This document shows positions 40,866-53,051 of a DNA stretch of 64,000 bases, piece by piece. The stretch is taken from sequence record ON529850.1; one strand, written 5' to 3'. The number at the start of each line of letters is the position of its first letter. Within the stretch, counting starts at the first letter, position 1. The notes beneath the pieces were generated by a model. It was not told the origin of the DNA and did not search any database. It saw only the letters and a list, made by a program, of their open reading frames with translations. The position numbers and the translations under genes were made by a program.

Positions 40866-41117
40866 TTACTCAGCCTGGGCGCCTCCGTCGATGAAGACGT
40901 TGGCCTGATACTGGACCAGATCGACGCGGAACTGTTCGACCAGGTCCTGGAGAACCGCGATGTTCTGGGGAGACAAATCCGCCAGAACGACGTCGGTGAT
41001 CGCGGCGGCGCCGCGAATGAGGGTCTGGTGCCGGGCCGCCTGTTGCGGGGTCTGCGACGTGGCGTCCGCAGAAATCACAAAGGCGGGCGGAACCGAATGG
41101 GCGAGCGCAGTGTTCAT
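40866..41117 (-). CDS. Hypothetical protein
   Basis: Fits the minus-strand operon; GGAGGG upstream. Confidence 0.6.
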   Translation of the reverse strand: MNTALAHSVPPAFVISADATSQTPQQAARHQTLIRGAAAITDVVLADLSPQNIAVLQDLVEQFRVDLVQYQANVFIDGGAQAE

Positions 41118-41225
41118 GGGAAGACCCCTCCAAAGGTCAGGCGTGACACGATGGAGGAAGGCTAACCCGACATTGCTGTTCGGGCAAGACGTTCTGCGGG
41201 CTTTTTCACCCGCAGCGTGTGCCGT

Positions 41226-41648
41226 TTAACGTGCTCCTGAGATCATGGTGACGATGGCGCCCACGACAGCGGCCAGAAGCGCTGATCCGCCGGCCGTCAA
41301 GGGGCCGATGATGATTTCCATGCGGGTGAGGCGTTTTTCCAACGCCAGCTTGTTCGCGGTGAAGTCGCGCTCGACGCGATCCAGCTCATCGGCGGCGTCT
41401 TTCTCGACTCGCGCTAGACGTGTATTGGCGTCTTTCAGATCGCCTTCCAGCTTCGCCAACTTGTTGGGCTGATCCTGGGCTTCGATACGCGCCAGGCGAT
41501 CGCGCACGTCGGTGAGGTCGTCGCGGAACGAATCAAACCGCGTGTCGACCTTGTCGACCAGACGGTCCATCTTGTCGTTGAGGGAGGTGAAGAGGCGCTC
41601 GACCGTATCGCGGAAACGATCTTCAGGCGTCAGGCCGGGGCTAAGCAT
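41226..41648 (-). CDS. Coiled-coil protein with C-terminal TM helix (XhlA-like)
   Basis: Heptad-rich body and a hydrophobic C-terminus; overlaps the PAS gene stop. Confidence 0.6.
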   Translation of the reverse strand: MLSPGLTPEDRFRDTVERLFTSLNDKMDRLVDKVDTRFDSFRDDLTDVRDRLARIEAQDQPNKLAKLEGDLKDANTRLARVEKDAADELDRVERDFTANKLALEKRLTRMEIIIGPLTAGGSALLAAVVGAIVTMISGAR

Positions 41649-42141
41649 CGAGACGCACCTCGGTGATGTGGGCCAGGCCGCACACCGCGACCGCTTCCCC
41701 GTTGACCATCAAGGGCCACTTCCATCCGTAGAAAACCAGCTCCACGCCCAGCTTGTCCGGATGGGGGACAGCGCCCTGGATCGACAGGGTGCGGCGTTCA
41801 ATCACGCAGGCGAGGTCTTCAGCCTCGAACGCTCCGGCGTCCCCGGTTTCCCACAGGTCGGCGTCGGGCCGCATGACATAGTCAATGGCGCGGATGCCCG
41901 TGGCACGGGCGTAGGGGCGATTGACGTGAACCATGGCGAACGTGCCGTCGGGTCGGATCGCCTTAATCCAGGCCGGGATAGGCAGATGTTCGAAAAAGCC
42001 CGTCAGCAGCAGGCAAGGGTCCTCGGACCGGCAATCAGCGGACGCTTCTCGCAGCGTTTCCAGGAGGTTCTGAATGTCCTGGCGCGGTTTGAGCGGGATG
42101 CCCAATCCGGCGTCGGAAGGGCGGTGGTCGATGTTCGACAC
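41641..42141 (-). CDS. Stand-alone PAS-domain protein
   Basis: FFEHLP.PAWIK...G......VN..Y....G.....Y..R.D.DLW....A..F...D..........K.PL...G....VCG pattern of PAS_4 folds. Confidence 0.75.
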   Translation of the reverse strand: MSNIDHRPSDAGLGIPLKPRQDIQNLLETLREASADCRSEDPCLLLTGFFEHLPIPAWIKAIRPDGTFAMVHVNRPYARATGIRAIDYVMRPDADLWETGDAGAFEAEDLACVIERRTLSIQGAVPHPDKLGVELVFYGWKWPLMVNGEAVAVCGLAHITEVRLDA

Positions 42142-42261
42142 GGCCTTCGTCCCCGACGTTTAGCTCGTTGATAATGGCCGGGAGGCTAAGCAATTTTTGG
42201 CTTAATGTCAAGGATTTCGTCAACGATTGACAGCCAAAATATTTCTTGACGTGGTCAAAAA

Positions 42262-42290
42262 CACATCCCGACCGGGCGGGGTCCGGTCGA
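42262..42290 (-). terminator. Probable terminator of the left tRNA operon
   Basis: cgaccgg/ccggtcg stem followed on the minus strand by tgtgttttt. Confidence 0.5.
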
Positions 42291-42409
42291 GACATGCCGA
42301 CGATAGATAAGGAGGACTCCAAGGTCACGGTATAGAACCCCGCCGCGACAATGACGTCTTCCTCCACCTAGCAGGTTACTCTTCCGACTGTCAACACATT
42401 GCGTCAAAA

Positions 42410-42492
42410 TGGCGACGCGCCCCGGACTCGAACCGGGCCTCTCAACCTTCGGAGGGTTGCGCCTGACGATGATCCTGCTCGGCCTGCGCGTC
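42410..42492 (-). tRNA. tRNA-Arg(CCG) with enlarged 17-nt D-loop
   Basis: Acceptor GACGCGC/GCGCGUC, anticodon loop CUCCGAA, T-loop UUCGAGU, encoded CCA. Confidence 0.8.
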
Positions 42493-42509
42493 GTGTTTGA
42501 CAGAAAAGA

Positions 42510-42592
42510 TGGCGCCCTGGGTCTGATTCGAACAGACCTTCTCAACTCCTGCTACGGCTACTGGTTTCGTAGACCAGCCCGGTTACCAGGGC
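42510..42592 (-). tRNA. tRNA-Arg(ACG), D-armless with a 23-nt variable region
   Basis: Acceptor GCCCUGG/CCAGGGC, CUGGU-CUACGAA-ACCAG, GUCUG-UUCGAAU-CAGAC, CCA; only 8 nt where the D-arm should be. Confidence 0.7.
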
Positions 42593-42622
42593 GTGTTGAC
42601 GATCACACTTCGTCAGTATAAA

Positions 42623-42706
42623 TGGCTCTTGCGGTAGGACTCGAACCTACAAGCCTTTCGGCGCTCGCTTAACAGGCGAGTGCGGCTACCATTTCGCCAC
42701 GCAAGA
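42623..42706 (-). tRNA. tRNA-Asn(GUU) with a type II variable arm
   Basis: Loop CUGUUAA; arm GCC-GAAA-GGC; G73; CCA. Confidence 0.85.
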
Positions 42707-42718
42707 TCAAAGAAAAGT

Positions 42719-42792
42719 TGGTTCAGGGGGAAGGAATCGAACCCTCATTTGCCGGACCAAAACCGGACGTAATACCGTTATACCACCCCTGA
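42719..42792 (-). tRNA. tRNA-Gln(UUG)
   Basis: Loop UUUUGGU; UCAGGGG/CCCCUGA; CCA. Confidence 0.88.
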
Positions 42793-42799
42793 ACAATAG

Positions 42800-42874
42800 T
42801 GGTAGCGGGTGAAGGAATCGAACCTTCGCGTATCGGTGTGTGATACCGATGCCTTACCACTTGGCGAACCCGCT
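42800..42874 (-). tRNA. tRNA-Val(CAC)
   Basis: Loop AUCACAC; body similar to Val(GAC) at 43035; CCA. Confidence 0.85.
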
Positions 42875-42957
42875 ATACTGAAAGGCGTATCTCCACCTCT
42901 CAGGTCGTCTATGCACTGGATCGCATAATCCTTCGTTATGCGCTCTACAGCATAAAA

Positions 42958-43032
42958 TGGTCCTCGAACTTGGAATCGAACCAAGATCATCCGATTATCG
43001 GTCGGGTGCACTAGCCGTTGTGCTATTCGAGG
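42958..43032 (-). tRNA. tRNA-Ile(GAU), C33
   Basis: Loop CCGAUAA; CCUCGAA/UUCGAGG; CCA. Confidence 0.85.
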
Positions 43033-43034
43033 GC

Positions 43035-43109
43035 TGGTAGCGGATGCAGGAATCGCACCTGCGCATGTCGGCGTGTCATACCGATGCCTTTCTACTTGGC
43101 TAATCCGCC
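43035..43109 (-). tRNA. tRNA-Val(GAC), T-loop UGCGAUU
   Basis: Loop AUGACAC; CCA. Confidence 0.82.
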
Positions 43110-43123
43110 ACACAGGAAAGGTG

Positions 43124-43198
43124 TGGCCCACTCGGGAGCGCTCGCATCTCCGTCTCGGGGATTTCACTCCCGCGCTACTCTATCTCAGCTACGAGTGG
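43124..43198 (-). tRNA. tRNA-Phe(GAA), atypical T-arm
   Basis: Loop GUGAAAU; CCACUCG/CGAGUGG; T-loop UGCGAGC; CCA. Confidence 0.72.
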
Positions 43199-43199
43199 A

Positions 43200-43282
43200 T
43201 GGTGGGTGGTTGAGGCATCGAACCTCTCCCGTTAGGCGCGGTGTTACAGACCGCTGTCGGAGCCAACCGACTTTAACCACCC
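43200..43282 (-). tRNA. tRNA-Tyr(GUA)
   Basis: Loop CUGUAAC; variable arm present; 5-bp D-stem; CCA. Confidence 0.85.
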
Positions 43283-43336
43283 GAAATTTTATCAGTCTCC
43301 GCCAGTCATGGCGATCTCCTGGGATGTGTAAAAGAA

Positions 43337-43366
43337 AAGGCCCGCCTGGATTTCCAGGCGGGCCTT
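43337..43366 (-). terminator. Intrinsic terminator directly upstream of the left tRNA operon (attenuator)
   Basis: ggcccgcctgg/ccaggcgggcc stem followed by ttttctttt on the minus strand. Confidence 0.85.
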
Positions 43367-43393
43367 CGAAGCTTGTTGCTGACTGTCTGAGGA

Positions 43394-43489
43394 CTATCCG
43401 CCCACCAAACCTTCGCACATGCACGAACGGCCCGCCCGGTAAAACCGGACGACGCGAATGTTCTGCACGTTTTGGCGATAGGTCATCAT
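43394..43489 (-). CDS. Putative leader peptide (31 aa, leaderless)
   Basis: MMTYRQNVQNIRVVRFYRAGRSCMCEGLVGG; ATG at the predicted TSS; contains GGCGGGCC, complementary to the terminator 5' arm. Confidence 0.6.
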   Translation of the reverse strand: MMTYRQNVQNIRVVRFYRAGRSCMCEGLVGG

Positions 43490-43496
43490 GGATTTG

Positions 43497-43525
43497 CTTT
43501 TACGCGATCTCTTTTATCGTGTCAA
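43497..43525 (-). promoter_or_regulatory. sigma70-like promoter of the left tRNA operon
   Basis: TTGACA, 17 nt, TAAAAG. Confidence 0.65.
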
Positions 43526-43716
43526 CTATTTCTTGGCGTGAATCCAAGATTTTTCAAAATCGGGCTCCCAAACGCCCCAATTCCCAACAGTCGGATAGTC
43601 CCGGTAACGCCATCCGCCGCAGTGCCGGCACATCGCTTCCAGCTGGAGACGTTCTTCGGGAAAGGGCTCGCAGTTGCCCCAAACAGCGCACGCGGGATCG
43701 CCTTCTTCACCGTCCG

Positions 43717-44259
43717 TCATCCGAGACGGACGCTCCGACGATGCGACGCGAACTTCTTCAAAAGCATGGAACGCTTCAACGAGGAGACCCGATCGATGTT
43801 GCGGATTCCGTCAAGATGATCCAGCTCATGCTGGATGCAGATCGCCTTGTATCCGGACCCGTAAAGGGTCTGGCGCTCACCCTGGACGTCGCTGTATTCG
43901 ACCGTCACCTCGCGGTGGCGGCTGACGTCGAAGAAGACGCCTGGCATGGACAGGCAGCCCTCCGGAAGCGACACCATGTCGTCCGACCGATCGATGATGA
44001 CGGGATTGATCAGCACCAGCTTGGCAAGGCCCGGCAACATGCTTTGGGTCGGCAGCGGACCATTGGGAAGATCAAGCATGGTGAACATCCGCACCGGAAC
44101 GCCCACCTGAACCGCCGCCAGGCCCGCGCCGTCCGCCGTCAGCATGGTGTGCAGCATGTCGTGCGCCAGCGTGAGGAGGTCTTCATCGATCTCGGTGATT
44201 TCGGTCGAGACCTGACGCATCAACGGATCAGTGCACGGCAGGATTTGACGAAGCGCCAT
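43717..44259 (-). CDS. def: Peptide deformylase
   Basis: All three motifs: GAGLAAVQVG, EGCLS, QHELDHLDG. Confidence 0.96.
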   Translation of the reverse strand: MALRQILPCTDPLMRQVSTEITEIDEDLLTLAHDMLHTMLTADGAGLAAVQVGVPVRMFTMLDLPNGPLPTQSMLPGLAKLVLINPVIIDRSDDMVSLPEGCLSMPGVFFDVSRHREVTVEYSDVQGERQTLYGSGYKAICIQHELDHLDGIRNIDRVSSLKRSMLLKKFASHRRSVRLG

Positions 44260-44498
44260 CAGGTCAAGGTCCCCATGCCGCCGGCAGTGGTGGTGCGACC
44301 ATCCCGCCAGCGCCCCACCAGACTGACCAAATGGTCCGAGCGCATCTCCAGCTCCTCCAGGACGTCAAGCGCTTGCATCAAAGCCACGCGCGCGTCTTCC
44401 AGGCCGATGTTCTGGAGCTGGACGAGACGGCCCCCGACCATGACCTGATAGCCATGATACGGGGGCGTGCCGGCCGATGCGTTATCGGCGTCGGGCAT
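44259..44498 (-). CDS. Hypothetical protein
   Basis: Stop/start coupled to both neighbours. Confidence 0.6.
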   Translation of the reverse strand: MPDADNASAGTPPYHGYQVMVGGRLVQLQNIGLEDARVALMQALDVLEELEMRSDHLVSLVGRWRDGRTTTAGGMGTLT

Positions 44499-44788
44499 CA
44501 GACTTCACCGAGCGCCGACATATACAGGTCCAGGATGGCGTCTTCTTCCTGACGCTTGGCCTTGTCCTGCTTACGCAGGCGGATGACCTTACGCAGGATT
44601 TTGACGTCGTAGCCCTCGCCCTTGGCCTCGGCGAAGACCTCCTTCATGTCCGCCATGACGGCCTGCTTATCCTCTTCGAGTCGCTCCAGGCGCTCGATGA
44701 TGGAACGCAGACGACCCTGGGCCGAAGAGGTCAGAGCGTCGGCGTTCGTGAAGGTGGTGTCGCCGTCGGTCGTGGTGGGGTGAATCAT
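44498..44788 (-). CDS. gapR: GapR (DUF2312/UPF0335) nucleoid-associated protein
   Basis: LRSIIER.ERLEE.K....D.KEVFAEAK..GYD.KILR.VI.LRK.D...R.EE.A.LDLY..ALG. Confidence 0.93.
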   Translation of the reverse strand: MIHPTTTDGDTTFTNADALTSSAQGRLRSIIERLERLEEDKQAVMADMKEVFAEAKGEGYDVKILRKVIRLRKQDKAKRQEEDAILDLYMSALGEV

Positions 44789-44809
44789 TCTGTTCTCACA
44801 GGCGTTGCG

Positions 44810-45034
44810 TCACTGAGTGACAAGGAAATGAAGAATCGCCAGAAGATCGCGATCGACACGCGGGTCTTGCGCCTTCTGTTCGATGATGCGCAGGGCAGCC
44901 TTTCGCCGTGCGACCTGTCGGCCCACAACTATATTGCCATGCTGTTCTATGGCGTTTTCCAACTCTTCCGGGTCGACATAGGTGGAAATCGGATCGCCAT
45001 ATTTGCGGGCGCCGGGAAAGCGAAACTCAGTCAT
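44810..45034 (-). CDS. Hypothetical protein
   Basis: Start MTEFRF at 45034 with GGAGGAGG RBS. Confidence 0.6.
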   Translation of the reverse strand: MTEFRFPGARKYGDPISTYVDPEELENAIEQHGNIVVGRQVARRKAALRIIEQKAQDPRVDRDLLAILHFLVTQ

Positions 45035-45176
45035 CCGTCCCACCCTCCTCCGCCACAAATCGTCCGTCGACGAAGGCTCCGACACGGGTGACGCCGTTCA
45101 GGCGCTGAACCAGCTGCCCGTCCTCAATCCAGTAGTAGGGGATGCCCCACTCCTCATGGAAAAGAACGTCGGTCAC
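45027..45176 (-). CDS. Small hypothetical protein (49 aa)
   Basis: Not in the track. GTGA overlap with the upstream stop; TDVLFHEEWGIPYYWIEDGQLVQRLNGVTRVGAFVDGRFVAEEGGTDD. Confidence 0.6.
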   Translation of the reverse strand: MTDVLFHEEWGIPYYWIEDGQLVQRLNGVTRVGAFVDGRFVAEEGGTDD

Positions 45177-45475
45177 GCTTCACCGGGGCGTGCGGCGTAG
45201 GGCGCGAAGGTGAAGTGATTGGGCGCCGCGACCGGCGGCAGATCATCGCCCGTGATCGGGCGGATGAAAAAGCGCATCAGCGCATTGTCGACGTTCTGCC
45301 AGGACGCCGCCTTCCATTCATCGCGAGCCGCTTCCCAGGTGGGAAAGACGCCCCGAACCACGACGGCCTGCGGATTACGAAACGCCGCCTGGAACGTCTC
45401 CTTGTCTCGGGCGGGGTCCGTGACGGCCAAGTCCGCCATCTCTCCACCGTAGACAGAATAACCGCAGACGCACAT
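45173..45475 (-). CDS. DUF4170-like protein
   Basis: VYGGE...D......VV.GVFP.W.AA...W.A.....VDNA.MRFFI pattern typical of alphaproteobacteria. Confidence 0.72.
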   Translation of the reverse strand: MCVCGYSVYGGEMADLAVTDPARDKETFQAAFRNPQAVVVRGVFPTWEAARDEWKAASWQNVDNALMRFFIRPITGDDLPPVAAPNHFTFAPYAARPGEA

Positions 45476-46239
45476 CAGCCGATCTCCACGATCAAATTGG
45501 GGTCGAAGTTCGGGTTCAACTCGTGCCCGATATAGCCGCGCGGATTGGTCAGCACGCGCGTCTTGCCGATCTGGTAGTCGCTGGAATCGTGCATGTGCCC
45601 GTGAACCCACAGGTCCGGTTCATACTCCAGGATCAGCGGCTCCAGGCGGGACGCATAGCAGGGGTTGAGTTCGCTGCCCCGATAACGGGGATGGCTGGAC
45701 CGCTCCGAGGGCGCATGGTGGGTCACCACCACGGTCGGACCGTCATGCGACAGGCGCAGTTGCTCACGCAAGAAGAAGACGCTGCGCGTATGCAGCGACA
45801 AAACCGCTTCAGGGGTGAGCAGGCGCATCGGTTCGGTTTCGATCTGCCGGTAGTCCGTCATGCCGCGCCTGGCCGCCATCATCGACAGATACTGGGTGCC
45901 GTAGAGATTGAAATCCGTCCAAAGGGTCGCGCCCAGGAACCGCACGCCGTCGATCACGAGCGCCTCGTCATCCAGAACGTGAACCGAAGACCCCAGCTCG
46001 ACCGCCTTGGCCTTCATTTTCTCGATGTGGCGTTTGATCCGACGCTTGCCGTAGAACTCGTGATTGCCGGGAACGTAGACGACCGGAACGCCAGGAAAAT
46101 GGCGATCCGCCCAGATCACGCCCACAACACCCGTGGCGGCGTCGCCAGCCAGGACCAGCACATCGCAAGGCGCCGGCGTGTAGTCGCGGCCCATGCCGCC
46201 GAACTCCAGGTGCAGGTCGCTCAGAATGTTGATGCGCAC
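45475..46239 (-). CDS. Calcineurin-like metallophosphoesterase
   Basis: SDLH, LAGD, GNHE, VTHH, WVHGH.H, NPRGY motifs. Confidence 0.93.
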   Translation of the reverse strand: MRINILSDLHLEFGGMGRDYTPAPCDVLVLAGDAATGVVGVIWADRHFPGVPVVYVPGNHEFYGKRRIKRHIEKMKAKAVELGSSVHVLDDEALVIDGVRFLGATLWTDFNLYGTQYLSMMAARRGMTDYRQIETEPMRLLTPEAVLSLHTRSVFFLREQLRLSHDGPTVVVTHHAPSERSSHPRYRGSELNPCYASRLEPLILEYEPDLWVHGHMHDSSDYQIGKTRVLTNPRGYIGHELNPNFDPNLIVEIG

Positions 46240-46256
46240 GCGTATCCCCGTAAAAC

Positions 46257-46375
46257 TGGAGCGGGTGGGAAGACTTGAACTTCCGCCTCCGGGTTAGCGA
46301 CCCGGCACTCCTGATCTCGGCCGAGACCCGCAACCCGGTTCGGCCGAACCTGCTGCGCCCTAGAGCTTCACCCGC
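46257..46375 (-). tRNA. 119-nt tRNA-like RNA: Gly-type acceptor, GCU (Ser) anticodon, 52-nt D-loop insertion
   Basis: GCGGGUG/CACCCGC, U73, CCA; CCGGG-UCGCUAA-CCCGG; GGAAG-UUCAAGU-CUUCC; short variable loop. Confidence 0.72.
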
Positions 46376-46379
46376 ATAA

Positions 46380-46610
46380 GGCGGCAGGAGTTTTAAAGGT
46401 GATGCGTCACCGGGCAAGCCCCCTGCCAGAAACCCCGTCTCCGCTTTTGTGAGGTCCAGAGACGAACGACCCTTCAAAGGCTCACATGGCACGACGTCGT
46501 CTCACGCGCTCCAGGCGTAGTCGCCCGAAACCGCAAGCCCGAGAGGTGGTGCGCGATGGTATCGCCTTCCCGAGGCGACGCCTTGCGACGCCGCGATCTT
46601 GTGTGGGGAT
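46380..46610 (-). ncRNA. Candidate structured RNA (~230 nt) upstream of the 119-nt tRNA
   Basis: Follows terminator 46647-46674 and TTGACG (46638-46633); helices UCGCC/GGCGA, UGUGAG/CUCACA, GGCAGGGG/CUCCUGCC, GGUGA/UCACC. Confidence 0.45.
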
Positions 46611-46646
46611 TACTGGCACTGTTCGACACGGGCGTCAACAAAGAAA

Positions 46647-46674
46647 AACGCCCCGGCGTTTCGGCCGGGGCGTT
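46647..46674 (-). terminator. Intrinsic terminator
   Basis: aacgccccggc/gccggggcgtt followed by tttcttt on the minus strand. Confidence 0.85.
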
Positions 46675-46676
46675 CT

Positions 46677-46994
46677 TCAGAGGTTCATCATCCACTGCTT
46701 GCGGTAGCGCGTGAAATCCTTCCAGGATTTGCCGGCGCGGCGGGACGCCATGATGTCGTCCCAGGAGGACGGCAGATGCTTCCGGTTCCCCCGCACGGAG
46801 ACGACACGATCATGGACGTCACCGGCGTTTCGACGGCGTTCCTGCATGGTGCGCGGATGCCGGAAATACTGCCGCCAGACGTGGCGGAACTCGCGGCAAC
46901 GCAGAGGATCGCCCTGGACCCCGCCGTAGTAATAGGTCCAGCAGCCGATCCACAGAAATCCGTGGTGGGTGATGCGTTGGAATTGGGGCTTCAA
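46677..46994 (-). CDS. Hypothetical phage protein
   Basis: R.P.T.QERR...R..R..LPSSWDD.......KSWK...RKQW; followed by a terminator. Confidence 0.75.
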   Translation of the reverse strand: MKPQFQRITHHGFLWIGCWTYYYGGVQGDPLRCREFRHVWRQYFRHPRTMQERRRNAGDVHDRVVSVRGNRKHLPSSWDDIMASRRAGKSWKDFTRYRKQWMMNL

Positions 46995-47097
46995 AACAGC
47001 CTCCTGTCAGGTTGATTACCTAACGGGTGCTGTGCTCCAGGTAGAATTTGATCATCATGGCCCTATGATACGGCAAGCTGGACCGTTGGTCCAGAAA

Positions 47098-47186
47098 TGG
47101 CGGATGGGGCAGGGATCGAACCCGCGTAACCCTCTCGGGTGTCGACCGCTTAGCAAGCGGCTGCCTTACCTCTCGGCCACCCATCC
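47098..47186 (-). tRNA. tRNA-Ser(GCU)
   Basis: Loop UUGCUAA; long variable arm; G73; CCA. Confidence 0.93.
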
Positions 47187-47193
47187 GTGGGTG

Positions 47194-47278
47194 TGGCGGT
47201 GAACCAGGGAATCGAACCCTCAACCTTGCGGTCGGCTACGGTTTTCAAGGCCGCTTGTCCCCATGGACGCTGCTCACC
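47194..47278 (-). tRNA. tRNA-Ser(UGA), allo-tRNA-like D-arm and 4-bp T-stem
   Basis: Loop CUUGAAA; D-arm GUCC-AUGG-GGAC; AGGG-UUCGAUU-CCCU; CCA. Confidence 0.82.
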
Positions 47279-47285
47279 ATAAAGG

Positions 47286-47375
47286 TGGCGGACGGCGCGC
47301 GATTCGAACGCGCGGACCCTTGCGGGCCGCCTGCTTTCCGGGCAGGTGCCTTAAGCCAGACTCAGCCAGCCGTCC
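47286..47375 (-). tRNA. tRNA-Ser(GGA), C33
   Basis: Loop CCGGAAA; long variable arm; G73; CCA. Confidence 0.9.
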
Positions 47376-47380
47376 GTTGT

Positions 47381-47598
47381 TGGTGGAGGCGAGGGGATTC
47401 GAACCCCCGTAGACGCCGAACCCCCGCATTACCAGGGGCCGATCTTCGGTTTAGAACGCGTGTGCCGCTCTGACCATCTTCCGCAGGCCAGGTGGTCTAT
47501 CGTAACGACCCCGTCGATCGGTTGCCTCTGCGCCCCGGTTTTACCCGGACCGTTATCCTGTTCCACGGTGCTCATGCCGAAACCCGAGCGACGCCCCC
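47381..47598 (-). ncRNA. ssrA: Compact one-piece tmRNA-like RNA (218 nt)
   Basis: 5' GGGGGCG pairs with 3' CGCCUCC including G3.U70; A73; CCA; T-arm GGGG-UUCGAAU-CCCC; GGGUUUCGGC D-analogue; no anticodon arm. Confidence 0.78.
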
Positions 47599-47607
47599 GT
47601 GAAGAAA

Positions 47608-47695
47608 TGGAGGATGGTGTGGGATTCGAACCCACGGAACCTTGCGGTCCTCCGGCTTTCGAAACCGGTGCGATCGGCCACTCCGCCAACCATCC
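47608..47695 (-). tRNA. tRNA-Ser(CGA)
   Basis: Loop UUCGAAA; long variable arm; U73; CCA. Confidence 0.9.
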
Positions 47696-47702
47696 ATATC
47701 AG

Positions 47703-47888
47703 TCAGGCGGCCGCCGGACTGTAGTTGTCGATGTCGTCGACCCGGATCGCCGTTCCCGCCGCGATTTGGCGGTCGGCGCTCAACAGGTCGGCGACCAGGT
47801 CCTCCGCCGAGACGTCGCCGCCGGAAGTGGCGAACTTGACGTTCACCACTCCATTGTCGTACATCTCGGCGATCGCTGAGCGATCCAT
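47703..47888 (-). CDS. Small hypothetical protein (61 aa) inside the tRNA array
   Basis: AAAGG RBS; acidic, protein-like composition; fills the gap between two tRNAs. Confidence 0.65.
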   Translation of the reverse strand: MDRSAIAEMYDNGVVNVKFATSGGDVSAEDLVADLLSADRQIAAGTAIRVDDIDNYSPAAA

Positions 47889-47921
47889 GGCATGCCTTTC
47901 TGCCGGCGTCGCCGGCGGTTA

Positions 47922-47997
47922 TGGTGGAGATGAGGGGAGTCGAACCCCTGACATCCTGCTTGCAAGGCAGGTGCTCTACCAACTGAGCTACATCCCC
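47922..47997 (-). tRNA. tRNA-Ala(UGC)
   Basis: Canonical; G3.U70; loop CUUGCAA; CCA. Confidence 0.96.
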
Positions 47998-48027
47998 AAG
48001 ATGGGTGTCAGTTTTCCTGACAATTGT

Positions 48028-48103
48028 TGGGCCTGGCACTCGGATTCGAACCGAGCCATGCGGCTCCACAAACCGCCGCCTCCACCGCAGAGGCTTTACC
48101 AGG
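48028..48103 (-). tRNA. tRNA-His(GUG)
   Basis: Loop UUGUGGA; C73; no encoded G-1; CCA. Confidence 0.87.
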
Positions 48104-48105
48104 AT

Positions 48106-48193
48106 TGGTCGCAGCGACAGGAATCGAACCTGCCCGGCCTTTCGGCCACCAGCCTCTCATGCTGGCGCGTCTACCAGACTCCGCCACGCTGCG
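48106..48193 (-). tRNA. tRNA-Leu(GAG)
   Basis: Loop AUGAGAG; variable arm; A73; CCA. Confidence 0.92.
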
Positions 48194-48202
48194 ATCAAAA
48201 GT

Positions 48203-48288
48203 TGGTGCCGGTGGTGGGATTCGCACCCACCCGCCACTAAGGACACCAGTTTCTGAAACTGGCGCGTCTACTGCTTCGCCACACCGGC
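48203..48288 (-). tRNA. tRNA-Leu(CAG), T-loop UGCGAAU
   Basis: Loop UUCAGAA; variable arm; A73; CCA. Confidence 0.87.
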
Positions 48289-48298
48289 AATGATGTGT

Positions 48299-48384
48299 TG
48301 GTGCCCGCCCCCGGACTCGAACCGGGACGCCACGAGGGCCACGCCTTTTGAGGACGCTGCGTCTACCTTTCCGTCCAGACGGGC
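48299..48384 (-). tRNA. tRNA-Leu(CAA)
   Basis: Loop CUCAAAA; variable arm; A73; CCA. Confidence 0.88.
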
Positions 48385-48393
48385 TTGAGAAGA

Positions 48394-48479
48394 TGGTGCG
48401 GGCGAGAGGATTCGAACCTCCCCGGCACAAGGCCACGGGCATCTGAAGCCCGCGCGGCTACCAGCTTCGCCACGCCCGC
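48394..48479 (-). tRNA. tRNA-Leu(CAG), second divergent copy
   Basis: Loop UUCAGAU; canonical T-loop; CCA. Confidence 0.92.
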
Positions 48480-48483
48480 ACTT

Positions 48484-48565
48484 TGGAGAACCACGGTGGA
48501 GTCGAACCACTTGCGCCTGGATTAAAAGCCCAATCCCGGCCACCCGGATTTAACGCTCGTGGTCC
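48484..48565 (-). tRNA. tRNA-Lys(UUU), (8/4)-type fold
   Basis: GGACCACG/CGUGGUUC; GUGG-UUCGACU-CCAC; 9-nt linker before a tetraloop D-arm; loop CUUUUAA; CCA. Confidence 0.75.
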
Positions 48566-48580
48566 TCGATTCTCGAATAT

Positions 48581-48667
48581 TGGAGGATGTGGTGGGACTC
48601 GAACCCACGATGGACTTTCGTCAGAGGATTAAGAGCCCTCCCCTCTCGCCGCTGAGGTGACACATCC
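48581..48667 (-). tRNA. tRNA-Lys(CUU) with a variable arm
   Basis: Loop CUCUUAA; arm GAC-GAAA-GUC; U73; CCA. Confidence 0.85.
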
Positions 48668-48703
48668 GTTTAAACTGTATAGCGTCTCCATGAAGACTGT
48701 TGA

Positions 48704-48774
48704 TGGTGCCAGCGGAGCGGGATCGCACCCTCCTCCAACCACTACGAAAGGCTGGTCCTCCTAGAGGCGCCGGC
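48704..48774 (-). tRNA. tRNA-Thr(CGU), atypical (mini D-arm, extended anticodon stem)
   Basis: GCCGGCG/CGCUGGC; CCUC-UAG-GAGG; CCAGCC/GGUUGG around UUCGUAG; A73; CCA. Confidence 0.62.
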
Positions 48775-48782
48775 GTTGTTCT

Positions 48783-48853
48783 TGGTGCCAAGAGTGGGAG
48801 TCAAACCCACCCTGAACCCCTACCACGGGCTCGTCCGGTCACCCGGCCTTGGC
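48783..48853 (-). tRNA. tRNA-Thr(GGU), atypical (mini D-arm, 6-bp anticodon stem)
   Basis: GCCAAGG/UCUUGGC; CCGG-GUGA-CCGG; GAGCCC-GUGGUAG-GGGUUC; 3-nt variable loop; CCA. Confidence 0.68.
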
Positions 48854-48860
48854 GTTATCC

Positions 48861-48935
48861 TGGTCAGAGCGGGAGGTCTCGAACCTCCGACCCCTGCCTT
48901 CCCGAGACAGTGCGCTACCCCTGCGCCACACTCTG
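48861..48935 (-). tRNA. tRNA-Pro(GGG), C33 and A37
   Basis: C1-G72, A73; loop UCGGGAA; CCA. Confidence 0.87.
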
Positions 48936-48938
48936 ATC

Positions 48939-49013
48939 TGGTCTGGGCCGAGGGGATCGAACCCCCGTCATCCGGCTCCCAAAGCCGGCGCCTAACCGCT
49001 CGGCCAGACCCAG
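48939..49013 (-). tRNA. tRNA-Pro(UGG)
   Basis: Loop UUUGGGA; CCA. Confidence 0.93.
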
Positions 49014-49028
49014 ATTGTTATTAAGAAA

Positions 49029-49106
49029 TGGTCTGCGCATCAGGATTTGAACCTGAGACCCCCACGCTCCGAAGGTGGTACTCTGACCAGGCTGAGCTAT
49101 ACGCAG
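49029..49106 (-). tRNA. tRNA-Pro(CGG)
   Basis: Loop UUCGGAG; CCA. Confidence 0.92.
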
Positions 49107-49119
49107 ATGTGAAAAACGA

Positions 49120-49150
49120 AAAGGCCCCAGAGGCGTTGCGCCTGGGGCCT
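49120..49150 (-). terminator. Intrinsic terminator directly upstream of the central tRNA operon (attenuator)
   Basis: aggccccag/ctggggcct stem followed by tttcgttttt on the minus strand. Confidence 0.85.
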
Positions 49151-49222
49151 AAAACAGCTGCTGATTTGGGAGTTCAGCAGGTGATCGGCCCCTCGGGCGC
49201 CTCACCTGCTGTAAGGAAGACC

Positions 49223-49360
49223 TTAGATGGTCTCCGTTGCAGAGGTGACGCCACCGGTGGTGGGGGATTTCGGCGACAGCGTGGCCGGCGCATAGGCGAG
49301 CGTCGACAGCGCCGAAGCGGCGGTCGAATGAAGGCTCAGCTTGTGCGACAACTTGGTCAC
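49223..49360 (-). CDS. Putative leader peptide (45 aa, Ser/Thr/Ala-rich)
   Basis: AAGGA RBS, GTG start; MTKLSHKLSLHSTAASALSTLAYAPATLSPKSPTTGGVTSATETI. Confidence 0.55.
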   Translation of the reverse strand: MTKLSHKLSLHSTAASALSTLAYAPATLSPKSPTTGGVTSATETI

Positions 49361-49408
49361 GAGAGAAATCCTTAGAAGGAAGGGCGTCGAAACGCGATTG
49401 AAGCTTCA

Positions 49409-49437
49409 TCTTTACAGCAAGCTTTTTGGCTTGTCAA
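49409..49437 (-). promoter_or_regulatory. sigma70-like promoter of the central tRNA operon
   Basis: TTGACA, 17 nt, TAAAGA. Confidence 0.65.
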
Positions 49438-49518
49438 GCAAAGATCGAAATTTATTTCGAGGGCTGCCCCTCGCGACGATTACTGCCAGATTTCCTGACA
49501 CACGTCAACCTGGAAAGT

Positions 49519-49559
49519 GACGCGCGCGGCCTCGGGGGAGCGGGAAGGCCGCGCGCGTC
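49519..49559 (-). terminator. 14-bp hairpin, probable terminator
   Basis: gacgcgcgcggcct/aggccgcgcgcgtc followed by acttt. Confidence 0.65.
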
Positions 49560-49562
49560 GGG

Positions 49563-49850
49563 TCACACCGGCCTCGGGGACGGGGCGGCCGGATCGGGAG
49601 CGCCGCAGCGGTCGGGAACGCCGCGACGATTCTTCGGGAGCCGCTCGCGCAGTGGCGGGACCGGAACCGGTCCATAGATCACCTCGACGACGCGGCGCCG
49701 GATTTTTCGGGTAGTCGGGAGAGGGACGCCGCGCCGAATCAATTCAGCGCCGGCCGCCGAACTCGAAAGCGATCCTGACAGATAGATGTCCAGAAGCGCC
49801 GAAGTCGGCATGGCGCGCATACGCTGCGCGCGGTGGGGATTATGGACCAT
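49563..49850 (-). CDS. Hypothetical protein
   Basis: GGAGAG RBS; ends at the hairpin. Confidence 0.5.
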   Translation of the reverse strand: MVHNPHRAQRMRAMPTSALLDIYLSGSLSSSAAGAELIRRGVPLPTTRKIRRRVVEVIYGPVPVPPLRERLPKNRRGVPDRCGAPDPAAPSPRPV

Positions 49851-49949
49851 AGGGTCTCTCCATGCTGGGTCTAGCCCAGGCGGAGGACACGCCTAATGGT
49901 TCAGACGCTGTATCGCGTCCATCCGCCTGGGTTAATCAGCGGAGAGGAA

Positions 49950-50144
49950 TCAGGGAATGTCGGTCTTGGTCGGCGCGAACACCGAAACGACCGCGTCGAG
50001 CGCCTTCTTGAGGCGGCTGGGACGCTGGGTCAACGCCGAGGCGCAGACCTTCTTGATCTCGTCGTGGGTCAAGGAGCCTGGGTCGCGCAATCCGCGTGCG
50101 GCGATCGACGCAACAGAGGCGGAGGTGACTTCCTGGCGAGACAT
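49950..50144 (-). CDS. Small hypothetical phage protein
   Basis: TS..VASIAA..L.DP......K.V.ASALTQ. Confidence 0.7.
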   Translation of the reverse strand: MSRQEVTSASVASIAARGLRDPGSLTHDEIKKVCASALTQRPSRLKKALDAVVSVFAPTKTDIP

Positions 50145-50160
50145 GACGTGAAGAAATCCT

Positions 50161-50235
50161 TGGCGAGCCTAACGGGAGTTGAACCCGTCTTTCCAGCGTG
50201 ACAGGCTGGTGTCCTAACCGATAGACGATAGGCCC
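50161..50235 (-). tRNA. tRNA-Asp(GUC)
   Basis: Loop CUGUCAC; G73; CCA. Confidence 0.93.
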
Positions 50236-50263
50236 TTTCCAGGGATGTCGGTCTAGGAGGTGT

Positions 50264-50341
50264 TGGCACAGCCGACGGGGGTCGAACCCGCATTATCCTG
50301 CTTGAAAGGCAGGTTTCCTAGTCCATTTAGAAGACGGCTGC
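50264..50341 (-). tRNA. tRNA-Glu(UUC)
   Basis: Loop CUUUCAA; G73; CCA. Confidence 0.92.
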
Positions 50342-50375
50342 ACAGAACACGAGCCGACCTCTACGAGTACCGCTT

Positions 50376-50441
50376 TTAGGCGGTGCGCGTATCTCGGCCC
50401 GTGAAGGCCTCTCGCTCTCGAATGGACGTCAGGTAGGTCAT
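50376..50441 (-). CDS. Putative leader peptide (21 aa, leaderless)
   Basis: MTYLTSIREREAFTGRDTRTA; ATG 8 nt after the -10 box. Confidence 0.45.
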   Translation of the reverse strand: MTYLTSIREREAFTGRDTRTA

Positions 50442-50448
50442 AACGGGA

Positions 50449-50477
50449 CTATTAACAGAATCGCTTTTCGGTGTCAA
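50449..50477 (-). promoter_or_regulatory. sigma70-like promoter of the Glu/Asp tRNA unit
   Basis: TTGACA, 17 nt, TAATAG. Confidence 0.65.
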
Positions 50478-50647
50478 GAACGACGTCGATCTTTTCGATG
50501 TTTTTCTTCGGGGACGTCCTCGCCGGGCGCTTCCTCAGCGTCCCAGGCCATCATCAAGGCGGCGGCGAAGGCTGGTCCCATGTCCGCTTCCAGCTGGCGC
50601 AAGGCCCGTTCGTTGGACCGTAGGAAAGCCTCGCTGTATTCGAGCAT
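50474..50647 (-). CDS. Small hypothetical protein
   Basis: GAGG RBS before MLEYSEAF; the track extends this ORF to 50752. Confidence 0.5.
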   Translation of the reverse strand: MLEYSEAFLRSNERALRQLEADMGPAFAAALMMAWDAEEAPGEDVPEEKHRKDRRRS

Positions 50648-50779
50648 GTCGACCTCAAATGAACAGGGGCCGACTTCAGCGCGCGCCGTCTGCCGGTTGC
50701 GCCTGGGCGGAAGCAGCGCACCAGTCCTGCTCGACTGGCCCAGCCCCTCCATCTCTATTTGTCAGGTTTGACGTCAAAC

Positions 50780-51092
50780 GTCAATGCGGAAATGCGGCGG
50801 TTACAGCTTCAACCAGCCCTTCAGGGCCTGTGGGTCTTTCGGGCGTCCTGCCCCGCCGCGCCTACTACGACGCCTTTTTCGGCCCCGGCGAACCGGAGAG
50901 GGTAAAAATCGACGGGTGACCGCTACCGGCCTCGCCTGCTGGCCCGTCCCAGCGCCCAACCTCACCGCGCAGCGCCCCTGTGGGCATATGGCCTTCCCGT
51001 CCGAAGACAGACGCCATGCGGTGGTGGCAGGGCCGCTTGCCCTTACACCCGCACGGCCTGGGCGGGGAGAGAGGCAGAGGCGAACCCCGGAA
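50780..51092 (-). ncRNA. Candidate structured RNA (~310 nt) downstream of tRNA-Gly(UCC)
   Basis: Long-range CCCCGCC/GGCGGGG helix, cUUCGg hairpin, GCCC-UGAA-GGGC; shares a 13-mer with the 1201-1782 RNA. Confidence 0.5.
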
Positions 51093-51095
51093 TGA

Positions 51096-51170
51096 TGGAG
51101 CGACCGGCGGGGATCGAACCCGCGCATGTCAGGGTGGAAACCTGATGCCTTTCCGCTTGGCTACGGTCGC
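51096..51170 (-). tRNA. tRNA-Gly(UCC)
   Basis: Loop UUUCCAC; U73; CCA. Confidence 0.93.
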
Positions 51171-51180
51171 GAAAGTAAAG

Positions 51181-51257
51181 TGGAGCGTCCAGTGAGAATC
51201 GAACTCACCCCCCGCGCGTTGGCAACGCGCTGTACCCACCAATAATACGTTGGACGC
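51181..51257 (-). tRNA. tRNA-Gly(GCC)
   Basis: Loop UUGCCAA; U73; CCA. Confidence 0.9.
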
Positions 51258-51267
51258 AAAGTAAATA

Positions 51268-51343
51268 TGGCGCCGGACAAGGGACTCGAACCCTTCACAC
51301 ACAGTTTTGGAGACCGCTGCTCTACCCCATGAGCTAGACCGAC
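51268..51343 (-). tRNA. tRNA-Trp(CCA)
   Basis: Loop CUCCAAA; G73; CCA. Confidence 0.92.
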
Positions 51344-51351
51344 AGGTATCT

Positions 51352-51906
51352 TTACTTAAATCTTTTAACCAGAAACTCCATCACACGTTGCGGTGTAGTT
51401 TCGTCAGCTTTTACGCGAAAGTCAATACGCCCTTCCAACAATTCCAACAACTGTAGATCGATTTCCCTGGCTTCGGCCTCATTGTGATGCCGGCCATAGG
51501 TCTGATAGGCACCGTCTGGGCGCTCCAACCAGATGTTGACGTTGTCGTAGAGATCAAACCGCTCAAACACCTCCCGATGGAAGGCATCCGTTCGATAAGG
51601 CCCGGAGCTGTAGATGCAACTCAGCAGCAGCGGACTATCGGTGACGATCCAATCGACCTGGCCCAGCATGCGACGCTGACGCCGTTCTTGTTCCTCCAGC
51701 ACCTTGCGCTGGTTCGACAAGGAATCGAAATCCCGGTCGAACGAACACTCAGTCGCGTATTCTTCGATCTGGGCCGCCCTGGCCCCATTGATCTTCAGAT
51801 GAAAGAAGGTTCCGGCCTTGACGGTGGATTTACCCGAACACGGGCCGCCCCAAAAGTTCAACACGCGCGTAGGTGCAGGCGAGCCCATGCGAAGGACTTT
51901 CATCAA
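51352..51906 (-). CDS. P-loop NTPase / nucleotide kinase-like (NadR-type AAA)
   Basis: NFWGGPCSGKST Walker A; EYA.E; IVTDSPLLL. Confidence 0.85.
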   Translation of the reverse strand: MMKVLRMGSPAPTRVLNFWGGPCSGKSTVKAGTFFHLKINGARAAQIEEYATECSFDRDFDSLSNQRKVLEEQERRQRRMLGQVDWIVTDSPLLLSCIYSSGPYRTDAFHREVFERFDLYDNVNIWLERPDGAYQTYGRHHNEAEAREIDLQLLELLEGRIDFRVKADETTPQRVMEFLVKRFK

Positions 51907-51946
51907 AGACAGATTTTACAGATAGGCGCGCGACCGCGCCGTGCGG

Positions 51947-52219
51947 TCAGCTACGCCAGAGCGCGTCGTCGTCATCCGAGACAGTGTCTTCGGATGCGCG
52001 ACGCCGACGACCTCGCCCTCGGGCGGGTTCCGGCTCCAGCGCTTCGATCTCCGTCGGCTCTTCATCGGTCGGATCGACCGTTTCCACCGTCGGGGTGACT
52101 TCCACGCGAGTCCACGGCGTGCGCGACCAGCCTTGCTCCAGGACAAGCTTCTGCGCCTTCGACGGAGTAACGTCGAAGGGCTCGCAAAGGTCAGGAGAAT
52201 AGACGCGTTCGGTAGCCAT
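51947..52219 (-). CDS. Hypothetical protein (probably leaderless)
   Basis: ATG 9 nt after the -10 box of the promoter at 52228-52256. Confidence 0.65.
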   Translation of the reverse strand: MATERVYSPDLCEPFDVTPSKAQKLVLEQGWSRTPWTRVEVTPTVETVDPTDEEPTEIEALEPEPARGRGRRRRASEDTVSDDDDALWRS

Positions 52220-52227
52220 GATCGAGC

Positions 52228-52256
52228 ACTTTATACGAAGTTGGCGCGGACGTCAA
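52228..52256 (-). promoter_or_regulatory. sigma70-like promoter
   Basis: TTGACG, 17 nt, TAAAGT. Confidence 0.65.
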
Positions 52257-52268
52257 GAATTACGTCAG

Positions 52269-53051
52269 TCAAATCGACCATTGGAACAAAACCGACTTCT
52301 TCTCTCCCGGCGTGACGGCATATTCCGACTCCAACGGAGTCAGGAAATCGTTCAGAAAGACACCGTCGATGAAGGCTCCGGTTGCGCGATGGGATTGAAC
52401 AAAGCGCGGCGGGCCTCCCGCTCCATAGGCGTCAAATCCCTGCCCCAGACGCCAGCCGTTCAAACGACGCACGACGCGTTCCCCCTGCGTCCAGAGATAG
52501 GCGCGATATTCACCGCGCAGCAGGGTCGTGTTGAGGGCCACCCTCATCATCGCATTTTCCGCCGGCGCGTGTTCGATGTGCGAGAAAACCAATCGATCTA
52601 CCGCATCGTAAAGGCCAAGGCGCACCGCCCCTGAACCCGTCCCCAGCCAGGCGGCGGCGGCCGACAGCTGCATGAAATCCGACGCGACATAGAACCGCTC
52701 GAACAGGATGGTTTCCGCCGGCAATGACGTGTCTTCGGGAGAACCGTCCAACACAATCCCCGGCACCGCATAGCCGCCCTTCGGCAGGTCCACCGCCGTG
52801 ACCCCCTCTACGCGCGCAAGAGGCGCCAAGGCACTATCCCAGACCAGGACACCGTCCTTGCGGGTCAGGGGTGCTCCGCTGGGACCTTGGGCCGGCGCCA
52901 CGCCGCTGACAGCCGCCGGCAGATGGATCGCTTCTGGACGGCCGTCGACACGCAGGTGCAGCTTGCGATCTGCGGTGTTATGTCCGACCTGCCCCGGAAG
53001 GAGATGTGGCCTGGCTCCGGGCGTTGCGGAATGCTTGTTCTGGATAGCCAT
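52269..53051 (-). CDS. Virion fibre-associated protein
   Basis: Coupled to 53051-53659; PGQVGHNTADRKL N-terminus; C-terminal block resembles the C-terminus of the 3020-aa protein. Confidence 0.65.
   Translation of the reverse strand: MAIQNKHSATPGARPHLLPGQVGHNTADRKLHLRVDGRPEAIHLPAAVSGVAPAQGPSGAPLTRKDGVLVWDSALAPLARVEGVTAVDLPKGGYAVPGIVLDGSPEDTSLPAETILFERFYVASDFMQLSAAAAWLGTGSGAVRLGLYDAVDRLVFSHIEHAPAENAMMRVALNTTLLRGEYRAYLWTQGERVVRRLNGWRLGQGFDAYGAGGPPRFVQSHRATGAFIDGVFLNDFLTPLESEYAVTPGEKKSVLFQWSI

Follow-up and report, generated by a model that had tools for sequence, protein, structure and literature searches.

To determine how a phage might control the transcription of its own tRNA genes, the region upstream of a tRNA cluster was analyzed in Brevundimonas phage vB_BpoS-Gurke (ON529850.1), a 321-kb member of the Dolichocephalovirinae. 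The window, that is, the whole stretch of DNA analyzed, is 64,000 nucleotides long, and a window coordinate plus 186000 gives the coordinate in the record. The region of interest lies on the minus strand between the last CDS of a peptide-deformylase operon (stop at 43526) and tRNA-Tyr (starting at 43282), an interval in which the record annotates nothing. A preliminary description, made from the sequence alone, had proposed an attenuator-like leader here, by which the tRNA genes would be transcribed only when translation of a short ORF changes. The question was whether this leader is real, whether it is conserved and what its translation could sense.

Anatomy of the leader and the downstream tRNA genes

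All the elements of the preliminary description were confirmed on the minus strand. A sigma-70-type promoter consists of TTGACA (43525-43520), a 17-nt spacer and TAAAAG (43502-43497), and the stop codon of the upstream CDS abuts the -35 hexamer. An ATG is located at 43489, 7 nt after the -10 hexamer, and opens an ORF of 31 codons (43489-43397) with its stop at 43396-43394, which is predicted to be translated as a leaderless mRNA. The ORF is followed by an intrinsic terminator (43367-43330) comprising a 14-bp stem (43367-43336; 10 G-C pairs), a 4-nt loop and a UUUUCUUUU tail extending to 43330, which was the second strongest terminator-like site in a 13-kb scan. Downstream of it are AGGAG (43320-43316) and the 5-codon mini-ORF MTGGD (43309-43292), which are present only in read-through RNA. 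The only promoter-like site between the terminator and tRNA-Tyr, TCGCCA-N17-TAAAAT (43314-43286), was rejected as the tRNA promoter, because its start would fall inside tRNA-Tyr and it is not kept in the Marchewka, Colossus or BL10 groups.

The preliminary description had noted an 8-nt copy of the terminator 3' arm inside the ORF, but this copy is longer. It is 11 nt (CCGGGCGGGCC, 43439-43429) and differs from the 3' arm at one base, which still gives a G-U pair. The pattern CCRGGCGGGCC occurs only three times in the 64-kb window, all in this leader, against 0.38 expected.

The preliminary description had also counted nine tRNA genes, whereas ARAGORN at default settings called six (Tyr, Val, Ile, Val, Gln and Asn). 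Relaxed thresholds added a Phe-like gene (43124-43198), with a mismatched anticodon stem and an odd T-loop, and two 83-nt Arg-like genes (42510-42592 and 42410-42492) with extra sequence in the D region, all of which have an acceptor stem and an encoded CCA and lie at positions syntenic with tRNA-Phe and tRNA-Arg annotated in relatives. The operon (42410-43282) reads, in order, Tyr(GTA), Phe-like(GAA), Val(GAC), Ile(GAT), an 83-nt gap, Val(CAC), Gln(TTG), Asn(GTT) and the two Arg-like genes. The gap (42875-42957), where the Caulobacter phages other than BL47 carry a second tRNA-Ile, is not tRNA-like, and the gene was probably lost or has decayed. All 24 tRNA genes called by ARAGORN between 42623 and 51343 carry a genomically encoded CCA end.

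Conservation and predicted RNA structures of the leader

A search with the leader DNA found 39 phage records, all Caulobacter or Brevundimonas phages, and 15 of them were examined. In all 15, the -35 TTGAC begins exactly 36 nt before the ATG although the spacer sequence differs, the ORF has 31 or 32 codons and ends with TAG, TAA or TGA at the same place, alignment gaps inside the ORF are 3 nt long, and the terminator follows (in BL47 with a variant stem and a weaker tail), with a tRNA cluster that begins with Tyr. The homologous site is annotated as a rho-independent terminator in CcrColossus, CcrSwift and phiCbK. The genes upstream differ between phages, so the promoter-leader-terminator-tRNA unit travels as a module. 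An exact degenerate pattern of the conserved core found only the known isolates in IMG/VR and nothing in metagenome contigs, and a looser pattern (segment 2 plus terminator) found three contigs that are ordinary gene ends without tRNAs; accordingly, the covariation described below rests on isolate genomes only.

The leader RNA was predicted to fold at -76 kcal/mol, far better than shuffled sequences (z = -5.7; 0 of 200 shuffles as good). The minimum-energy fold comprises a long protector hairpin (43480-43411), a hairpin holding the stop codon in or next to its loop (43410-43385) and the terminator. The protector has three parts: two outer helices (43480-43475 with 43416-43411, and 43469-43465 with 43422-43418) and a core (43452-43444 with 43440-43432). 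In the outer part, the Tyr-Arg codons pair with codons 25-26 and the Val codon region pairs with codons 23-24. When the terminator 3' arm was left out, the fold switched to the proposed antiterminator, in which segment 2, the 11-nt copy (43439-43429) plus UUCG (43427-43424), pairs with 43368-43354, a region that includes segment 3, the terminator 5' arm (43364-43354). The same switch was predicted in 14 of the 15 phages, with 9-11 of 11 bases paired.

Next, the helices were examined on an alignment of 14 distinct leaders. The 11 antiterminator pairs hold in 98.1% of cells, with compensatory changes in Bajun (A-U) and Colossus (U-A), and the extension through UUCG is kept in 9-14 of 14 sequences, depending on the pair. 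The protector core is 95% paired with three doubly changed pairs, and the terminator is 99% paired with two. All measures collapsed when the partners were slid by one to three columns, and RNAalifold found the protector core and the terminator on its own. The extended protector is paired in 92.8% of cells, against 33-52% when slid, which explains the conservation of the C-terminal half of the ORF without invoking a peptide function. Most helix positions are invariant, however, so covariation rests on a few events among related sequences. A hairpin around the stop codon is predicted in most relatives although its sequence differs.

Codon content of the leader and of two further tRNA leaders

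A feature not noted in the preliminary description is the composition of codons 4-18 (43480-43436), which encode YRQNVQNIRVVRFYR. This block is drawn only from Tyr, Arg, Gln, Asn, Val, Ile and Phe, the amino-acid set of the downstream tRNAs; the genes for Arg and Phe are low-scoring here but annotated in relatives. The set makes up 33% of a proxy proteome, and the run of 15 is the longest in all six frames of the window, the next longest being 10, with 0.007 such runs expected. At the codon level, all eight anticodon species of the operon are sampled at least once, including both Val species (GTG for CAC and GTC for GAC), although the two CGC codons in Gurke are cognate only if the gene at 42510-42592 is read by eye as Arg(ACG), which ARAGORN at relaxed settings calls CCG. 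By this codon-level measure the first leader alone is only moderately unusual, since 43 of 41,865 CDS windows do as well. Across ten distinct peptides, 28 of 30 residue states in the block belong to the set, against 12 of 44 in the flanks (Fisher p = 1e-8). The substitutions are chemically radical (F/N, V/R, Q/R, F/I/N/Y), which is what selection on which tRNA reads the codon would give, and not what selection on peptide chemistry would give.

The design is repeated in the same window on the minus strand. The Pro/Thr/Lys/Leu/His/Ala/Ser operon (49106-47098) is preceded by a TTGACA promoter (49437), an SD-led 45-codon ORF with a GTG start (49360-49223), hairpins and a terminator (49149-49112). 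This leader is unannotated in Gurke, and phiCbK annotates the homologue as gp083. Of its 44 residues, 38 come from the set of that operon, including a run of 21 that is again the longest in the window. In Gurke, Marchewka, Bajun, phiCbK and Colossus, 35-41 of 38-44 residues are in the set, and no operon tRNA species is left unsampled by the codons of the leader. The two leaders are specific for their own operons (Fisher p = 7e-9), and none of 39,639 random CDS windows matched the second leader at the codon level. Global folds of the second leader, however, gave no clear switch, and its switching geometry could not be resolved.

A third leader (50477-50342) precedes tRNA-Glu and tRNA-Asp and comprises a promoter and a leaderless 21-codon ORF (50441-50376), in which Glu at codons 9 and 11 and one Asp are invariant in four divergent phages. 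A long terminator-like hairpin carries the Asp codon in its 5' arm, which lies inside the ORF, and the stop codon in its apical loop. In all three leaders the stop codon lies in or beside the loop of a small hairpin (43410-43385, 49240-49215 and 50385-50370). In contrast, the Trp-Gly-Gly cluster has no leader and follows a CDS directly.

Possible mechanism, related systems and other RNAs of the region

Taken together, these results suggest that the element is a ribosome-mediated transcription attenuator that controls a phage tRNA operon and uses the products of the operon as its signal, a reading to which we assign a probability of about two in three. The parts, their conservation, the alternative pairings and the codon-tRNA match are shown, whereas translation of the ORF, the start site, the kinetics and the direction of the switch are inferred, as there are no transcript-end, ribosome or tRNA data for any of these phages. 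In this model, host RNA polymerase starts at or next to the ATG and the leader is translated as a leaderless mRNA, which is plausible because C. crescentus has 375 leaderless mRNAs translated as well as leadered ones (PMC4117421). If all the cognate charged tRNAs are plentiful, the ribosome runs through, the protector re-forms behind it, the terminator folds and transcription stops before tRNA-Tyr. If any block codon is read slowly, the ribosome covers the 5' strand of the protector, the 11-nt copy is left free to capture the terminator 5' arm as soon as it is made, and polymerase reads through, resulting in demand-driven, self-limiting tRNA synthesis. The helix energies are -15.7 (protector core), -27.6 (antiterminator duplex) and -30.2 kcal/mol (terminator hairpin alone). 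An equilibrium stall scan with a masked footprint did not discriminate, because the antiterminator is favored whenever segment 2 is uncovered, with or without a ribosome; termination must therefore rest on kinetic trapping by the protector, which was not modelled. In a simple footprint model, only stalls at about codons 10-14 cover the protector core, and the role of the other block codons needs a toehold argument. The outer protector helices may let early stalls act as well by exposing the UUCG next to segment 2 as a nucleation site, whose pairing to CGAA before the terminator is kept in most phages, but this step is inferred.

More broadly, it appears somewhat more likely than not that Dolichocephalovirinae phages run each of their leader-preceded tRNA operons in this way, with a leader peptide that lists codons for every tRNA species of the operon, so that a shortage of any one opens transcription of the whole set. 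High demand, host shut-off or tRNA-cleaving defences are possible causes of such a shortage; the triggers put forward in the preliminary description, such as nuclease attack or ribosome damage, are not shown. Phage tRNA genes are usually treated as a fixed supplement to the host pool, and a leader of this kind would mean that the phage measures decoding capacity codon by codon. It would link phage tRNA clusters to the loss of host tRNA during infection and to tRNA-targeting immune systems, which phage tRNAs are thought to counter (PMC12409363).

Among the alternatives, the one that survives best, although it is unlikely, is that the same parts couple read-through to translation in general, either because active ribosomes are needed to prevent termination or because amino-acid starvation or charging is sensed, without negative feedback on tRNA supply. 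Consistent with this, equilibrium folds give the antiterminator whenever segment 2 is exposed, including after the ribosome has passed; any ribosome on the Glu/Asp leader would block its terminator, and hairpins next to the stop codon of the second leader could be opened by a terminating ribosome. However, a general coupling device would not need a block restricted to the amino acids of the operon, nor substitutions that stay in that set, and the conserved protector around the block is the hallmark of stall-dependent switching. It is more doubtful still that the ORF is a free-standing small gene encoding a functional 31-residue basic peptide, with a terminator that simply ends this gene and the upstream deformylase operon and tRNAs made by leak-through or with a separate phage antitermination factor. 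The ORF is conserved in length and frame, some annotators called it, or the second leader, a hypothetical protein, and no terminator separates it from the upstream CDS, so the hairpin also ends that operon. Nevertheless, the radical substitutions confined to the tRNA set, the RNA pairing of the C-terminal half and the position kept before the tRNAs while upstream genes differ argue against it, the 11-nt arm copy and its compensatory changes have no role in this reading, and no family matched in Pfam or NCBIfam, with only chance-level hits in PHROGs (E = 0.045-0.09). A non-coding small RNA of about 160 nt with an incidental ORF is the least likely, since the compact promoter-to-terminator unit, its strongly structured fold and faint, non-significant Rfam hits to alphaproteobacterial sRNAs (E about 0.5) are outweighed by the fixed promoter-ATG distance, the frame open in all 15 phages with 3-nt gaps, the variable stop-codon type at a fixed position, the coding-level conservation of the residue set and the same composition rule in the second leader, which has an SD and a GTG start.

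Leader-peptide attenuators of the enterobacterial trp, his, leu and phe operons likewise combine a promoter-proximal short ORF rich in diagnostic codons, three mutually exclusive helices and an intrinsic terminator before the structural genes, with a stalled ribosome freeing the antiterminator strand, a step that is inferred for the phage leader. Here, however, the regulated genes are tRNAs rather than biosynthetic enzymes, the leader lists one or two codons for each of seven amino acids instead of a run of one, the mRNA is predicted to be leaderless, the ORF runs on through segment 2 and stops about 30 nt before the terminator, and the element is viral. The ilvGMEDA and thr leaders also spread several regulatory amino acids along a long protector stem, but appear to mix only two or three made by the regulated pathway, whereas here seven amino acids, and distinct synonymous codons matching distinct anticodons, mirror a tRNA gene list. 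The pheST attenuator, with its pheM leader, similarly regulates a translation-apparatus gene through the reading of cognate codons, but controls an aminoacyl-tRNA synthetase and senses one tRNA. T-box riboswitches (RF00230) sense tRNA status to set a terminator/antiterminator choice, but bind uncharged tRNA directly and have no leader peptide; no T-box hit was found in an Rfam scan at E up to 1 over 41000-53000, and no other Rfam family matched the leader. Literature searches found no description of leader control of tRNA genes. The phiCbK genome paper reports terminator prediction but no RNA element other than tRNAs (PMC3556154), the Gurke genome paper does not discuss the element (PMC10070969), and the supplements of the phiCbK RNA-seq paper (GSE241057, PMC10688885) hold no entry under the gp080-gp084 tags. 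If the reading is correct, this would be the first attenuator known to regulate tRNA genes and the first whose sensed molecules are its own gene products.

The mini-ORF downstream of the terminator is missing in several relatives. An SD-led mini-ORF of 4-5 codons (MTGGD, MNNGG or MTGN) with synonymous variation occurs in Gurke and Kikimora, in the five Marchewka-like Brevundimonas phages, and in CcrColossus, CcrPW, CcrBL10, CcrRogue and BL47. It is absent in Bajun and in phiCbK, CcrSwift and BL57, although GGAGATC is kept in the latter three. Its layout of an SD, a start codon, a few codons and a stop resembles that of the phage lambda bar minigenes, but there is no evidence of peptidyl-tRNA drop-off or toxicity here.

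Two other RNAs were noticed on the minus strand. An isolated tRNA-like sequence (46331-46260; Rfam tRNA 31.1 bits, just above the gathering score of 29) lies next to the metallophosphatase gene and away from the clusters. Inside the second tRNA operon, an RNA of about 230 nt (47607-47376) has a tRNA-like acceptor with a G3-U pair, a canonical T-arm and an ACCA end. It scored 31.7 bits against Rfam tmRNA (E = 1e-9), below the gathering score of 47, and ARAGORN found no tmRNA at default settings. The genome paper reports none, but this sequence may be a short phage tmRNA-like RNA.
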